Positions 70-29,927 are shown, counted from the first letter of the stretch. The stretch: 30,059 nucleotides of DNA from Macrostomum lignano (GCA_002269645.1 NIVC01000902.1:69477-99535), one strand, 5' to 3'. Translations and numbers: made by a program. The notes: generated by a model not told the origin, from the letters alone.

Positions 70-2397
70 ATCCAGAGTTGCAAGACATAACCGGAACTTC
101 CTGTTTGGACATCTTCAAGAAAGGATTCTACCTCTCTGACTACTACCTGATCAACAATGAGAGTCAGTATTGCCACCTGGCTGGTTAGTGAAATTGCCTA
201 CAAGTGTCGTTTTTCAAGTATCATTTTTGATCTTGATAGTTAATAAGAGCCAATCCCAAACTATGACCTGGCAGACAACTCATCCAGTCAGTGCGCCAAC
301 GGCAGCTTCGCATTCAATGGCTCTTGCTTTACCTTTCACAATCGCCCGGCTACGTTTGAGACGGCAAGCCAGAGCTGCGCCTCCTCGGGCGGACTGCTAG
401 CCAGTTTTGCTACTGTGGAGCGACTGGAGTTTTTAAAGATGACTCTCTCAAGTAGGTTGCTTTAGTGCTTTGTGGAAATCTTTCATCTTCGGGAATTAAG
501 CAGACAGTACGCGTGTGATATTTTCAAATAGCTTTCAAAAAAGGTGGTCACCATAGGCGCGCACCGGCACAAGCGCCAGTGTACTTTATGTCAAAGATCG
601 GGCATACTCGCGAGATCACAGGTGTACACGCGCAGATCAATGCGCAGTCAATGCTTGGTAGTAGATAAAGGTGATCAAGGTGTTTATTCGCCTTTCACAA
701 AGTACTTGATTGCACTGTATTTGTACGAAGTATTCGTACTAAAGTTCTGAACGCAATGAAAATTATTTGAGTCACAAAAACAAACAGATGTGCACTCGCT
801 GACGAACTCATCCAACTGGTGGCTCGGCTTCACCGACTCAAAGCAGCTCAAGATCCCCACGTGGCTCAACGGACACATCTACTCGGACAGCCAGCTGTTC
901 CCCCATGCTCGGACATTCCTGTTCAATCGCGGCTCGAAATTCTCAATAAAAAATGCGCCTGTATTGGGAAACCCGACTGGCGACCCCCTGAATGCCGCTA
1001 CCCTCGCCAGCTACGTCTGCGAGCCGAGAAGGACCCGGGCTGCCTGAAGATGGTCAGCCTTGCAAATTTCACGCACCGGTCCAGCTTCATGAGCCTCTCC
1101 ATGTGCCGCTACCTCTGCTTCTCCGCTGGCTTTGCCTACTCAGCCGTGATGCAGCAGAACTGCTCCTGCCTCAGCAGCCTCTCGGTGGCTGAGTACGGCA
1201 TTGAGGACACCAGACCGCTGGACTACTGCAATGCGCGGTGTCCGGGAAATCCCGACCAGTTCTGCGGCCGGTCAGCTGAGCCATACTTCTCCGTGCACAG
1301 CGCAGGTCTGTGTAGAATTTCATTTATACCGTACGTCGAAAACTGGAAAATGTCTTCCTAATATTCTGAAATTTTAGAAAACCTGCCTCCCGCCGCGAAC
1401 TGCTCAGTTCTGTACGCCAACGATATTCACTATCGGTTTCGGTACAAACTCTACAACACCAGCGGCCACAACTACTACTTCATGAACTGCGGCTTCACGG
1501 GTATGAACTTATGAAATTATTATAATTATGACAATATTGTCATGCTAACGTAAGTGTAATCAGAGAGTTCAAACATATATATTAGAAAATAATAACTTCC
1601 AGACCAGACTGCCTGCTCTGACGGCTGGTACGGCTTCAAGGGCAGCTGCTACCGGACGTTCAACGAGTCCCTGACTGAGGCGGCGGCCAGCCAGGCCTGT
1701 GCGCTGAACAACAGCTTCCTGGTGACTTTCCCAAGCAGCGAGTATTACGAGTTCGTGAAGAGCCTGACCACGCTGCTGCCGTACCACGCCAAGTTTCCCA
1801 ACTGGCTGCTGGGCTACGCAAAGCTGGACGGCTCTCAGGCGCAATCGCCCGTCATCAGCGCGTTGGCGACTTCGCAATGTACACCGGCGGCCCGGCAGTG
1901 CCGGACAGAGCGGCTACTGGAAATCTGCACAATTCTTCATGCGCAACGGCTCGGTGGTCTTTGAACCAGCCGCCACTGAATTCGCGCCCGTCTGCATCAG
2001 CAGCTCAAGTCAGTTCAGGCGTTGAATTTCATATTTCTCACCATTAACGTGCTTTTTGAAGTTTATTAGTATCTACTGGAAGTTTTACAAATAAACTTCA
2101 GTCATTTTTATACACAACTTTTACCAGATTTTGCTGCCTGCGGCCCGGCCTCGAACAGTTCGATGTCGATGCCTCTGCCCAGCGAGCTGTACCAGATCCC
2201 GCAGCAGTGCCTGCAGCTGTGCCGCTCAGCTGGTCTGCCATATGCCGGCCTGCTGCCTGGGAACTGCAGCTGCAGCGGTGCGCTTTCAAATTCCGCTACG
2301 GATAGAACTCTGTCTGACTGCTACGTGCAGCAGTGCAGCCATGTGAACTTTTCCAACTGCGGCTTCAACAATACCAACTGGGCCTGGTACCGGACGA
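70..2397 (+). CDS. Two repeats of [2-Cys cap, C-type-lectin-like domain, WSC domain] (part of unit 1)
   Basis: CTLD motifs: QCANGSFAFNGSCFTF...ASQSCASSGGLL...NWWLGF...YVCE and ACSDGWYGFKGSCYRTF...ASQACALNNSFLV...NWLLGY...PVC. WSC motifs: GCLKM...MCRYLCFSAGFAYSAV...NCSC...CNARCPGNPDQFCG and QCLQLCRSAGLPYAGL...NCSCS...C...QC...NCG. Confidence 0.8.
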
Positions 2398-29900: not shown

Positions 29901-29927
29901 ACCTGAGAAAGTTCTTCTGCGTTAAGC
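20844..29927 (+). CDS. Unit 2: spliced gene (3'-partial) for a secreted or surface mosaic protein: signal peptide, 10 Sushi-like modules, 2 WSC, cap, C-type-lectin-like domain
   Basis: Exons 20844-20940, 21334-21615, 21826-22098, 22369-22647, 23126-23398, 23556-23840, 24052-24324, 24427-24705, 24792-25064, 25610-25921, 26835-27027, 27137-27204, 27281-27649, 28785-29195, 29360-29542, 29640-29927. All junctions are canonical and phase-compatible, with no stop or frameshift. The last exon ends at a GTGAGT donor, so the gene continues beyond the window. Confidence 0.85.
21334..25064 (+). CDS. Four tandem pairs (D/E) of Sushi-like exons (part of unit 2)
   Basis: D exons (282, 279, 285, 279 nt): C.NFS...SSDGTLN.P.SQVNVTCS.GVG.YFA...SNW.QL.C...W...PVLPDC. 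E exons (all 273 nt): HVC.EP...FGA.LVYQCP...GF.F.GTG...N.A.MTCG..GWSV.MSGP...LL.CE. Confidence 0.85.
22761..22975. mobile_element. hAT-type MITE (215 bp), intronic
   Basis: Imperfect 15-bp TIRs CAGGGGCGGATTTAG and CTGGATCCGCCACTG. Perfect 8-bp TSD GTGGTAGA at 22753-60 and 22976-83. Internal repeat GCCCCTAAGCTTGATTTTTCGCCCCC occurs twice. Confidence 0.9.
25937..26778. repeat. (GTTA)n microsatellite of about 840 bp, intronic
   Basis: Pure GTTA to about 26388, then interspersed GTCT, GTTT and GTCA variants. Confidence 0.98.
27281..29927 (+). CDS. WSC-WSC-cap-CTLD block (part of unit 2)
   Basis: WSC1: YRGCF...NCRYTCS...TCHC...NCLTQC..SEYCGG...FSVY. WSC2: GCYK...ACIAYCRGLPGSQYAAV..VSCTC...CNLRC...DSCGG...YNIY. 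Cap: NSCTEYY...SSFYLL...AFC. CTLD: PCSPGWFGYRGSCY...TWPESVEFC...NKCFYL...NC...KFFCVK. Confidence 0.85.
28186..28385. repeat. Imperfect direct repeat of about 50 bp, two copies 150 bp apart
   Basis: GTGGCACCAGGTGACTATGGACACCCTGATGCGAATTTCTCAAGTTTT at 28186 and GTGGCACCGGGTGACTATGAACACCTTGATGCGATTTCTCTAGTTTT at 28336. Confidence 0.75.

Follow-up and report, generated by a model that had tools for sequence, protein, structure and literature searches.

The window, which is the whole 30,059-nt stretch of DNA that was analysed, carries two arrays of extracellular protein modules on the same strand. Using open reading frames together with AG/GT splice sites, 41 exons were rebuilt on the + strand between positions 70 and 29927, and the first and last exons found (70-183 and 29640-29927) agree with the limits given in a preliminary description of the locus. 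Unit 1 consists of three blocks of a two-Cys loop (the cap), a CTLD, and a WSC domain, which are followed by Sushi exons arranged as an A-B-C triplet repeat. Unit 2 consists of four D/E exon pairs, the modules F and G, two WSC domains, a cap, and a CTLD. Both putative genes extend past the window, unit 1 at its 5' end and unit 2 at its 3' end. A search for tRNA genes and Rfam families returned no match in the window.

Thirty-five of the 41 rebuilt exons are bounded by phase-1 introns on both sides (phase 1-1) and have lengths that are multiples of three. The exon scan sought phase-1 sites, which makes the phase count alone circular, and three independent checks were added. When the 29 clean exons from S1 to CtC were joined, the spliced translation gave 2,438 codons with no stops. 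The GC content is 56.8% in exons (GC3 of 71%) and 40.2% in introns, and an alignment of the spliced product with Macrostomum lignano proteins is free of gaps over eight splice junctions. Since the stop-free join, the GC contrast, and the gap-free junctions agree, the phase-1 structure stands despite the circular scan, as does the earlier description of a Sushi/WSC/CTLD cluster built from symmetric phase-1 exons. The further claim that the skipping of modules is frame-neutral is correct for the 35 phase 1-1 exons but overlooked three exons that break the multiple-of-three rule, all located in the head of unit 1 (788-1305, 518 nt; 1603-2008, 406 nt; and 2507-2636, 130 nt).

The head of unit 1 (all features on the + strand) begins with the cap1 exon (70-183, 114 nt, phase 1-1), which was identified by the splice scan and cap alignment. 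The N-half of CTLD1 is encoded by a phase 1-1 exon of 177 nt (275-451; Pfam Lectin_C, 6.5e-6), and its C-half is fused to WSC1 in the single exon 788-1305 (WSC, 9.8e-10). This latter exon contains three apparent frameshifts, located near 949-954, at about 1008, and at about 1024. As assembled, CTLD1 scores 27.3-28.7 bits for Lectin_C over the N-half only (profile positions 3-67), as compared to 36.4 bits (positions 3-106) after three conceptual frame corrections. The second block consists of the cap2 exon (1378-1500, 123 nt, phase 1-1; splice scan and cap alignment), the CTLD2 exon (1603-2008), and the WSC2 exon (2128-2397, 270 nt, phase 1-1), for which the Pfam WSC match of 1.2e-4 (22.7 bits) is under the curated cut-off. 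The N-half of CTLD2 shares 39-41% identity with the N-half of CTLD1, with the tail CTLD of unit 2, and with the M. lignano relative P0001 described below, while its C-half is legible only over three frames. With 16.9 bits for Lectin_C, Pfam sees the N-half weakly and does not recognise the C-half, and the conserved Cys3 of this domain has been lost by substitution. In the third block, a cap3-like exon (2507-2636) was again found by the splice scan and cap alignment; an in-frame alternative, 2442-2636, encodes a different, non-cap peptide. WSC3 is divided between two phase 1-1 exons, an N-half (3442-3609) and a C-half (4897-5028), and the joined halves match Pfam WSC over profile positions 1-80 (3e-5, 24.6 bits, under the cut-off). 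Within the intron that splits WSC3 sits a tentative CTLD3-like N-half exon (3728-3952), which was assigned by its Cys pattern and splice sites, and a tentative, short CTLD3-like C-half exon is found at 4518-4664. Both of these are phase 1-1 and have no Pfam match.

The remainder of unit 1 is an array of 14 Sushi-type exons, S1-S14 (5104-11820, +), all of which are phase 1-1 and which match Pfam Sushi with 9e-20. The exons are located at 5104-5328, 5414-5674, 5778-6011, 6425-6652, and 6797-7033 (S1-S5), at 7158-7376, 8491-8736, 8895-9113, 9220-9438, and 9835-10092 (S6-S10), and at 10252-10473, 10626-10841, 11093-11359, and 11596-11820 (S11-S14). The subtypes occur in the order C A B C A B (C missing) A B C A B C A B, with regular linkers of four residues between the modules, and the copies of the A-B-C triplet are 25-46% identical.

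The two units are separated by a gap (11821-20843) with transposon fragments and a tandem repeat. These include a Tc1/mariner DDE_3 fragment (14147-14554, +), the 3' part of a non-LTR retrotransposon with RNase H in an open frame of 459 codons (17638-19014, +), and 10 copies of a 55-bp repeat (19963-20514). Neither the gap nor the long introns contain Sushi, WSC, or CTLD remnants or decayed module copies. A scan of the gap for a GC3-rich terminal exon of unit 1 returned nothing convincing; one transmembrane-like terminal exon (15631-15707) was rejected on the basis of a GC3 of 28%, versus 71% in real exons, and a weak acceptor, with shuffled sequence giving 0.8 such exons per 30 kb. Immediately after the gap lies a candidate first coding exon of unit 2 (20844-20940, +), which resembles a signal peptide (MTGSGEISLRLGSVPTILLLVLVTATGALA|DE) and ends in phase 1. 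This exon is 393 nt upstream of D1 and has an A-L-A cleavage motif, coding-like GC, and a phase-1 donor, and the frame from its ATG is open for 1,379 codons. It is the only + strand match of the signal-peptide scan, for which ∼2 matches are expected by chance per 30 kb of shuffled sequence and ∼0.03 within 500 nt of D1. The presence of this exon suggests that unit 2 is a separate gene.

Unit 2, also on the + strand, begins with four D exons (21334-21615, 22369-22647, 23556-23840, and 24427-24705) that alternate with four E exons (21826-22098, 23126-23398, 24052-24324, and 24792-25064). All eight are phase 1-1, the E exons match Pfam Sushi, and the pairs (21334-25064) are colinear with P0001. 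Copies of the D/E pair are 55-76% identical, and the D and E copies have dN/dS values of 0.08-0.36 and dS values of 0.6-2.7. The pairs are followed by F, a D-like module with four Cys (25610-25921, phase 1-1; 38.6% identity to residues 185-241 of P0001), and by the Sushi module G, which is encoded by two exons (26835-27027 and 27137-27204; 46% identity to residues 272-341 of P0001). The intron within G is phase 2 and the outer ends are phase 1, such that the pair is phase 1-1 overall. The WSC4 exon (27281-27649, phase 1-1) is 47.5% identical to residues 357-471 of P0001 (E 5e-29), and its acceptor was placed at 27281, instead of 27233, from the alignment to this relative. WSC5 and the cap share a single phase 1-1 exon (28785-29195; Pfam WSC 5.5e-10, P0001 E 3.6e-22). 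The tail CTLD is encoded by two exons (29360-29542 and 29640-29927), each phase 1-1, which are 44% and 36% identical to P0038 and have no Pfam match; the position of the intron between them is common to the tail CTLD and CTLD1.

Splicing the exons and searching with the products, the check proposed in the preliminary description, confirmed Sushi, WSC, and one CTLD by Pfam and PDB profiles. For Pfam Sushi (PF00084, cut-off 20.7 bits), the unit 1 chain scores 71.3 bits (9e-20) and unit 2 scores 39.5 bits (7e-10). Among PDB profiles, the A-type profile matches DAF with 3.4e-10 and the C-type profile matches MASP-1 with 7e-4. Four Cys are invariant in A, C, D, and E, and a Trp is invariant in A, D, and E and is kept in three of the four C copies. 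The B-type module has Cys1 and Cys3 only, the Cys2-Cys4 pair having been lost. Neither D nor B has a significant profile match to CCP. In an AF2 model of B (pLDDT 78), CCP modules are the highest-probability Foldseek matches, at E values of at least 0.4 that are not significant, and the model of D (pLDDT 42) is too poor for fold matching. The B and D modules are thus Sushi-like but too diverged for confirmation as CCP by sequence or fold. Profile-profile comparison for the links D-C, B-A, E-A, and E-B gave a best E value of 0.016 (D versus C), and therefore the subtypes were kept distinct. The two units had been described as drawing on the same module set, which is true of the module families but does not extend to the Sushi subtypes, since no sameness is detectable between A/B/C and D/E. 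For WSC (PF01822, cut-off 27.8 bits), WSC5 (39.8 bits) and WSC1 (39.0 bits) score above the cut-off, and WSC2 and the split WSC3 score below it. The cap recurs five times in the window and, by alignment, is also present in the M. lignano relative. Lectin_C (PF00059) matches CTLD1 and, weakly, the N-half of CTLD2, with no match for the tail CTLD or CTLD3, and a direct reading of the translated CTLDs revealed none of the EPN/QPD and WND motifs for Ca2+ and sugar binding. The lack of sugar-binding motifs, together with the failure of Pfam to recognise most of these domains, makes lectin activity doubtful, and we regard the domains as CTLDs in the broad sense. N-X-S/T sites number 85 against 25.7 expected, a 3.3-fold enrichment, and the Cys content is 4.3-4.6%. 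This excess, the Cys content, and the signal-peptide-like exon all fit the extracellular role that had been proposed.

An exhaustive search of 1.84 billion representatives with the WSC5 and cap exon as query found only one clear relative, an uncharacterised M. lignano "WSC domain-containing protein." The UniProt entries A0A1I8H2P9 (824 aa) and A0A1I8JHH6 (1021 aa) have the same order of modules, D-E-F-G-WSC-WSC/cap-CTLD(-WSC). Unit 2 is colinear with the relative (P0001), with 273 of 653 residues identical (41.8%), a local score of 1250, and no gaps at junctions; tblastn E values per module range from 1e-5 to 5e-29 against the M. lignano relatives. At 36-48% identity per module, the relative is either a distant paralogue or from a different species, and its model is fragmentary and shows a single D/E pair. 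Judging from this one strong match, the host of the window is most probably a flatworm related to Macrostomum. In the relative, a WSC domain comes after the cap and CTLD, which matches the head of unit 1. Word-indexed searches with a 1,091-residue Sushi chain and a 904-residue composite of unit 2 returned nothing, and the prefilter missed even P0001. Because P0001 was later found by the exhaustive search, these long-query negatives are a prefilter artefact and carry little weight. A search of the literature for the two UniProt accessions and for this architecture found neither in any paper. These results uphold the view that the architecture does not belong to a named family, as the sole clear relative is uncharacterised and has the same module order. 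The family is apparently lineage-restricted, judging from a range sampled by few effective searches.

Several known systems share parts of this architecture. CCP proteins, such as DAF/CD55, factor H, beta2-glycoprotein I, and MASP/C1r/C1s, also have one module per phase 1-1 exon, the A, C, and E modules match CCP profiles, and four Cys, a conserved Trp, and regular linkers of four residues are also shared. However, the B module is without the Cys2-Cys4 pair, D and F are extended by ∼30 residues before Cys4 and are not recognisable as CCP, and the context is not that of a complement regulator. In selectins and lecticans, too, a CTLD and Sushi modules occur together in an extracellular protein, and the exons are phase 1 throughout. 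In contrast, the window modules have no EGF match in Pfam, differ in order and number, include WSC and cap, and contain CTLDs without visible Ca2+ or sugar-binding motifs. Polycystin-1 and the sea-urchin REJ proteins likewise have WSC and CTLD in a large extracellular region, although they have no Sushi arrays, and Pfam found no LRR, PKD, REJ, GPS, or multi-pass polycystin membrane region among the window modules. The invertebrate mosaic lectins P0016 (SUEL lectin-Sushi-CTLD-WSC-cap-F5/8C) and P0036 (CTLD-WSC repeats) use the same toolkit, and P0016 has a cap loop after WSC, with WSC and most of the cap aligned at 30% identity over 136 residues. These proteins differ in that they are short, have other partners (SUEL and discoidin), and are without Sushi arrays. 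Only three PDB entries match the cap profile with an E value below 10, two for MFAP4 and one for fibrinogen beta, and all three align at the loop that opens the fibrinogen-related domain (C...Y.I...V.C.M) with E values of 0.16-1.2 that are not significant. The likeness is limited to this loop of ∼35 residues; Pfam found no Fibrinogen_C, the remainder of the domain is missing, and a CTLD follows the cap. The Macrostomum adhesive proteins Mlig-ap1 and Mlig-ap2 contain CTLD, vWD, EGF, TSP1, and KR-rich repeats, and identity with them was ruled out because they are without Sushi or WSC (PMC6410801).

Our preferred interpretation, with a probability of roughly 0.7, is that the window contains two neighbouring same-strand genes of one lineage-restricted mosaic extracellular family, which would have grown by exon duplication and would encode secreted glycoproteins. 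A different interpretation is that the whole window is one giant gene, in which S14 is spliced to D1 over the 9.5-kb transposon-filled interval and the cap/CTLD/WSC blocks at the head and tail form an internal super-repeat of ∼29 kb. The S14 donor T and the GT at the start of D1 would create an in-frame Cys where the Cys4 of a Sushi module is expected, but this Cys is dispensable, since other B-type exons are without Cys4, and the resulting S14-D1 linker of two residues is below the regular four. Read-through of the 2,438 codons from S1 to CtC, the resemblance of the D1 acceptor (aag|GTG) to the internal D2 acceptor, the lack of a unit 1 terminal exon, and a gap without module remnants are all consistent with a single gene. 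Against these stands the signal-peptide-like exon just upstream of D1, with its low chance expectation, and we consider a single gene unlikely. Tandem paralogy, as suggested in the preliminary description, is plausible: the reading of unit 2 as a separate gene favours it, without proof, and the WSC that follows the cap and CTLD in the relative, as in the head of unit 1, points the same way. The missing terminal exon of unit 1 and the in-frame S14-to-D1 join count against it.

Within two genes, the cap/CTLD/WSC exons at the head of unit 1 would represent a copy that is decaying or locally mis-assembled at several places. Unit 1 could be a paralogue in decay, whether as a pseudogene or as a gene with dead cassette exons (the frameshifted CTLD and cap), in which phase 1-1 neighbours let broken exons be skipped and leave the rest unharmed. 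The three exons that are not multiples of three, the frame corrections needed for a full-length Lectin_C match of CTLD1, and the loss of Cys3 and unrecognised C-half of CTLD2 point in this direction, as does the confinement of the breaks to ∼1 kb of coding sequence, with ∼7.3 kb of other exons and the 459-codon transposon frame clean. However, the 14 Sushi exons downstream have all stayed intact and kept their Cys, which one would not expect of a long-dead gene, and at least one break lies in an A6 run (949-954), so decay is held tentatively. A6 homopolymer runs are typical sites of long-read error. Assembly errors in an otherwise wholly intact unit 1 could thus explain the breaks, the first being one base in this run and the remainder occurring at short C runs, and the WSC1 part of exon 788-1305 keeps eight of eight Cys. 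This explanation is rather doubtful given that a stretch of <1 kb of coding sequence contains five or six indels, versus none in the ∼7.3 kb of exons or the 1.4-kb transposon frame, and that the conserved Cys of CTLD2 was lost by substitution. A further proposal is that the symmetric exons are cassettes and that a recognition molecule acquires many isoforms through their splicing in combinatorial or mutually exclusive fashion. The frame is kept when any phase 1-1 exon is skipped, and two M. lignano entries differ only by an in-frame cassette of 197 residues (the C-half of a CTLD plus WSC), located at a junction homologous to the intron 29543-29639. However, this difference may stem from faulty annotation or assembly and would reduce the CTLD to one half, purifying selection on the modules is of the ordinary kind, and the search for Dscam-type elements found no intronic similarity among repeat units and hence no conserved elements usable as docking or selector sites. 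To our knowledge, all mosaic extracellular genes are as a rule built from phase 1-1 exons, and the majority of these genes show no combinatorial splicing. We consider cassette splicing very improbable, and most improbable its fullest version, a very large flatworm-specific surface or secreted family whose skippable Sushi, WSC, and CTLD exons yield many recognition or adhesion isoforms. If this were true, the isoforms could serve hermaphrodite mating and sperm interactions or self/non-self discrimination, with tandem paralogues as a further source of diversity, and the option of skipping would make dead exons tolerable.

Returning to two genes grown by exon duplication, each module would correspond to one exon or exon pair between phase-1 introns. 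Because the modules are bounded in this manner, exon groups could be duplicated in tandem with the frame kept, and such duplication would have produced the A-B-C triplets and D/E pairs. The identities among the triplet copies and among the pair copies are in line with the earlier suggestion that the arrays were enlarged in this way. The copies are probably old, with synonymous sites near saturation, and appear to have been retained under purifying selection. The products would be very large, heavily N-glycosylated proteins, secreted or at the surface, that form strings of small disulfide-bonded modules: several Sushi/CCP-like subtypes, WSC, and CTLDs, with a short two-Cys loop before each CTLD. 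From the established roles of Sushi, WSC, and CTLD modules, we infer secretion and glycan binding. The protein may act as a multivalent extracellular binder, in which attachment to glycans or matrix would fall to the WSC and CTLD blocks and the Sushi arrays would provide a glycosylated stalk and a protein-binding surface, in mucus, gland secretion, or a cell coat.

The lineage-restricted mosaic extracellular family is real, and it adds an example to the textbook process of exon shuffling without representing a novel type of system; general principles are unchanged by this locus. The value of the locus is as a well-preserved case of mosaic protein growth, in which duplicated exon triplets and pairs have been kept by selection. 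It also carries a lesson for annotation, as genes of this type almost wholly escape both automated gene models and word-indexed searches. The family is unnamed and apparently restricted to flatworms, and the databases show only fragments labelled "WSC domain-containing protein." M. lignano WSC-domain proteins are recurrent among prostate and seminal-fluid candidates (PMC4490696, PMC6953679). For this reason the family could, as a lead only, bear on fast-evolving secretions under sexual selection.

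The window was found to be eukaryotic genomic DNA with short introns (median 158 nt) and transposon debris scattered throughout. The coding signal bearing on the Sushi/WSC/C-type-lectin-like domain (CTLD) cluster lies on the + strand only; reverse-strand ORFs lie either inside a minisatellite or opposite the coding strand of a retrotransposon, and searches of the window for tRNAs and Rfam families returned none. Exons were rebuilt by selecting, for each open frame, AG acceptors and GT donors that gave phase 1 at both ends, and a few boundaries were adjusted afterwards by alignment to a related protein. 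The resulting 41 exons span 70-29927, exactly the limits given for the cluster in the preliminary description. That account had also held that nearly all modules are bounded by phase-1 introns, which largely stands: 35 of the 41 exons begin and end in phase 1 and have lengths divisible by 3. Three others have lengths not divisible by 3, all in the head of unit 1 (the upstream unit, a cap/CTLD/WSC head followed by 14 Sushi exons, S1-S14). In unit 2 (the downstream unit, comprised of D/E exon pairs, F, a G Sushi, WSC4, WSC5 with a cap, and a tail CTLD), the G Sushi has one internal phase-2 intron, with the exon pair being 1-1 overall; a signal-peptide-like exon upstream of the first D exon (D1) is phase 1 at its 3' end.

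Because the scan sought phase-1 sites, the exon count alone is circular. The phase-1 structure is backed independently by the 29 clean exons spanning 5104-29927, which join into 2,438 codons with zero stops, by the GC content of exons (56.8%, GC3 71%) versus short introns (40.2%), and by the spliced product, which aligns with M. lignano proteins ungapped across eight junctions. Two introns, 21616-21825 and 6653-6796, are multiples of three without stops in the exon frame, giving ORFs that span two exons (309 and 234 codons, respectively, stop to stop). Their retention would keep the frame; chance predicts about as many among 40 short introns.

Sushi modules were recognized by Pfam in both units (9e-20 for the unit 1 chain, 7e-10 for unit 2). 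BLAST among exon peptides sorted the 14 Sushi exons of unit 1 into three subtypes with 25-46% identity, in the order C A B C A B (no C) A B C A B C A B, and resolved four D/E pairs in unit 2 with 55-76% identity. Against PDB sequences, the A-type profile groups with DAF and beta2-glycoprotein I (3e-10) and the C-type profile with the Sushi (CCP) modules of MASP-1 (7e-4). The B-type retains Cys1, Cys3, and the Trp only; with Cys2 and Cys4 both absent, that disulfide was lost as a pair. Sequence searches with the B-type gave no significant match, and the most probable folds for its AlphaFold model (pLDDT 78) were CCP modules of MASP-1, MAP-1, and C1s, none of them significant. The D-type has four invariant Cys, the Trp, and a ∼30-residue extension preceding Cys4. 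It returned no CCP match, its structural model was unusable, and a weak profile match ties it to the C-type alone (E = 0.016). A 20/40/60-bp minisatellite at 7422-8332 (40-bp unit in about 23 copies, 90% match) fills the S6-S7 intron of 1,114 nt, the sole spot where the A-B-C pattern misses a C-type exon, and carries long spurious reverse-strand ORFs.

Pfam detected two WSC modules (5.5e-10 and 9.8e-10), two more copies being sub-threshold, and a Lectin_C domain in CTLD1 (6.5e-6). The tail CTLD and the short CTLD3 were not recognized by Pfam; both were assigned from their Cys pattern, their likeness to the N-terminal halves of CTLD1 and CTLD2, and the M. lignano relative. By direct reading, none of the CTLDs in the window carries an EPN/QPD or WND motif. 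The cap, a short 2-Cys loop module, is present in five copies in the window (three exons of its own, one copy fused to WSC5 in the tail, and the frame-ambiguous cap3), as well as in the M. lignano relative and in an unrelated invertebrate mosaic lectin. Its 39-column profile gave only three PDB matches at E < 10, all to fibrinogen-related domains (MFAP4 twice and fibrinogen beta), and in each of the three the aligned part is the N-terminal disulfide loop. With E-values of 0.16-1.2, this likeness is a lead rather than a result.

The head of unit 1 is broken. Exon 788-1305 fuses the C-terminal half of CTLD1 to WSC1, and as assembled a single-frame reading stops at 1048. As assembled, CTLD1 matches Lectin_C over profile positions 3-67 with 28.7 bits; one conceptual correction, made at the A6 run 949-954, extends the match to 3-99 (31.9 bits), and three corrections extend it to 3-106 (36.4 bits). 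The CTLD2 exon (1603-2008, 406 nt) requires two frame changes and has lost one conserved Cys, and the cap3 exon is 130 nt long. WSC3 (3442-5028) is interrupted by a 1.3-kb phase-1 intron enclosing CTLD-like exons at 3728-3952 and 4518-4664; all four pieces are phase 1-1, and the arrangement looks like a module inserted in the intron of another. The frame breaks are confined to <1 kb of coding sequence, with about 7.3 kb of other exons clean, and reflect either local decay or local assembly error.

The WSC5+cap exon served as query in an exhaustive phmmer search covering 1.84 billion representatives, which gave one strong match, A0A1I8H2P9, annotated as a WSC domain-containing protein of the flatworm M. 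lignano (E = 3.6e-22); the others were generic WSC proteins, mostly multi-WSC and fungal in the few with source checked. A0A1I8H2P9 aligns colinearly with the spliced model D4-E4-F-G-WSC4-WSC5/cap-CTLD (41.8% identity, 653 residues). Together with the composition of the window, this single match suggests a flatworm host, perhaps a Macrostomum relative. Its cluster mate A0A1I8JHH6 (1,021 aa) is 100% identical outside one 197-residue in-frame insert, a CTLD C-terminal half plus WSC, whose position coincides precisely with the junction that corresponds by homology to the phase-1 intron 29543-29639; alignment to A0A1I8JHH6 validates the last exon of the window (36% identity). Either one entry is an isoform with the exons skipped, or the difference is an artefact of annotation or assembly; as annotated, the in-frame cassette is present in one entry and absent from the other. 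The cap-CTLD of the relative is followed by a WSC, as in cap1-CTLD1-WSC1 at the window start, and judging from this order unit 2 very likely continues beyond the window in the way unit 1 begins.

Between the two units lies a 9.0-kb interval, 11820-20844, in which no module remnants were found. It holds a Tc1/mariner DDE_3 fragment (14147-14554) adjoined by a 25-bp x4 repeat, with a short palindrome at 14344-14394, and the 3' part of a non-LTR retrotransposon (17638-19014, +) whose uninterrupted 459-codon frame, with RNase H and a C-terminal Cys motif, indicates recent insertion. A 55-bp tandem repeat (19963-20514, 10 copies, 99% identity), either very young or homogenised, sits ∼330 nt upstream of the signal-peptide-like exon. 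That exon, at 20844-20940, was the single + strand match in a scan for first exons with an ATG start, a hydrophobic stretch, and a phase-1 end. It reads MTGSGEISLRLGSVPTILLLVLVTATGALA|DE, has coding-like GC, lies 393 nt upstream of D1, and opens 1,379 codons. Shuffled sequence yields about two such matches per 30 kb, thus about 0.03 would be expected within 500 nt of D1, and the exon is a likely candidate start of unit 2.

Alternatively, the units could form one gene with 11820 spliced to 21334, a join that would keep the frame, and scanning of the gap yielded no convincing terminal exon for unit 1. One candidate at 15631-15707 (+), a TM-like mini-ORF (FRIFILLLLVVCFVLYSGDLYTLNA plus stop) after a phase-1 AG, was rejected given its GC3 of 28%, wrong codon bias, and shuffled controls that do equally well; the T-rich DNA there probably produced it by chance. 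An AATAAA lies downstream at 16152. The probability of two genes is estimated at about two in three. The earlier proposal of tandem paralogues is plausible, favored by the signal-peptide-like exon and the relative's WSC after the CTLD.

Several other repeats were noted. An 842-bp (TAGT)n microsatellite (25937-26778) in the F-G intron accounts for the strong GC/AT skew at 26-27 kb. A dispersed repeat has two inverted copies (78% identity, 273 bp), one in a unit 1 intron (4103-4344) and the other between the units (19609-19879), and a 57-bp direct repeat (28176-28232/28326-28381, 86% identity) lies within the 1.1-kb WSC4-WSC5 intron.

Within the set of D copies and within that of E copies, dN/dS is 0.08-0.36 (dS 0.6-2.7), which indicates that the duplications are old and the copies held under purifying selection; no similarity between introns of the repeat units was detectable. 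N-X-S/T sites number 85 versus 25.7 expected by composition, and Cys content is 4.3-4.6%. Taken together with the coding evidence and with what is known about how Sushi, WSC, and CTLD modules function, these values point to a heavily glycosylated extracellular protein. The exon rebuild, the Pfam matches, and the M. lignano alignment confirm the modular cluster first noticed in the sequence, and the A-B-C and D/E exon-group copies together with the relative support its reading as a lineage-restricted, unnamed family diversified by duplication of exon groups. The preliminary interpretation gains partial support, with combinatorial splicing its speculative element. A literature search for A0A1I8H2P9, A0A1I8JHH6, or the same architecture found no mention, and other invertebrate mosaic lectins draw on a comparable toolkit. 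The shuffling of phase 1-1 exons that encode Sushi, CTLD, and related modules is a textbook principle, and the locus is of modest general interest and of use mainly in flatworm biology and annotation.
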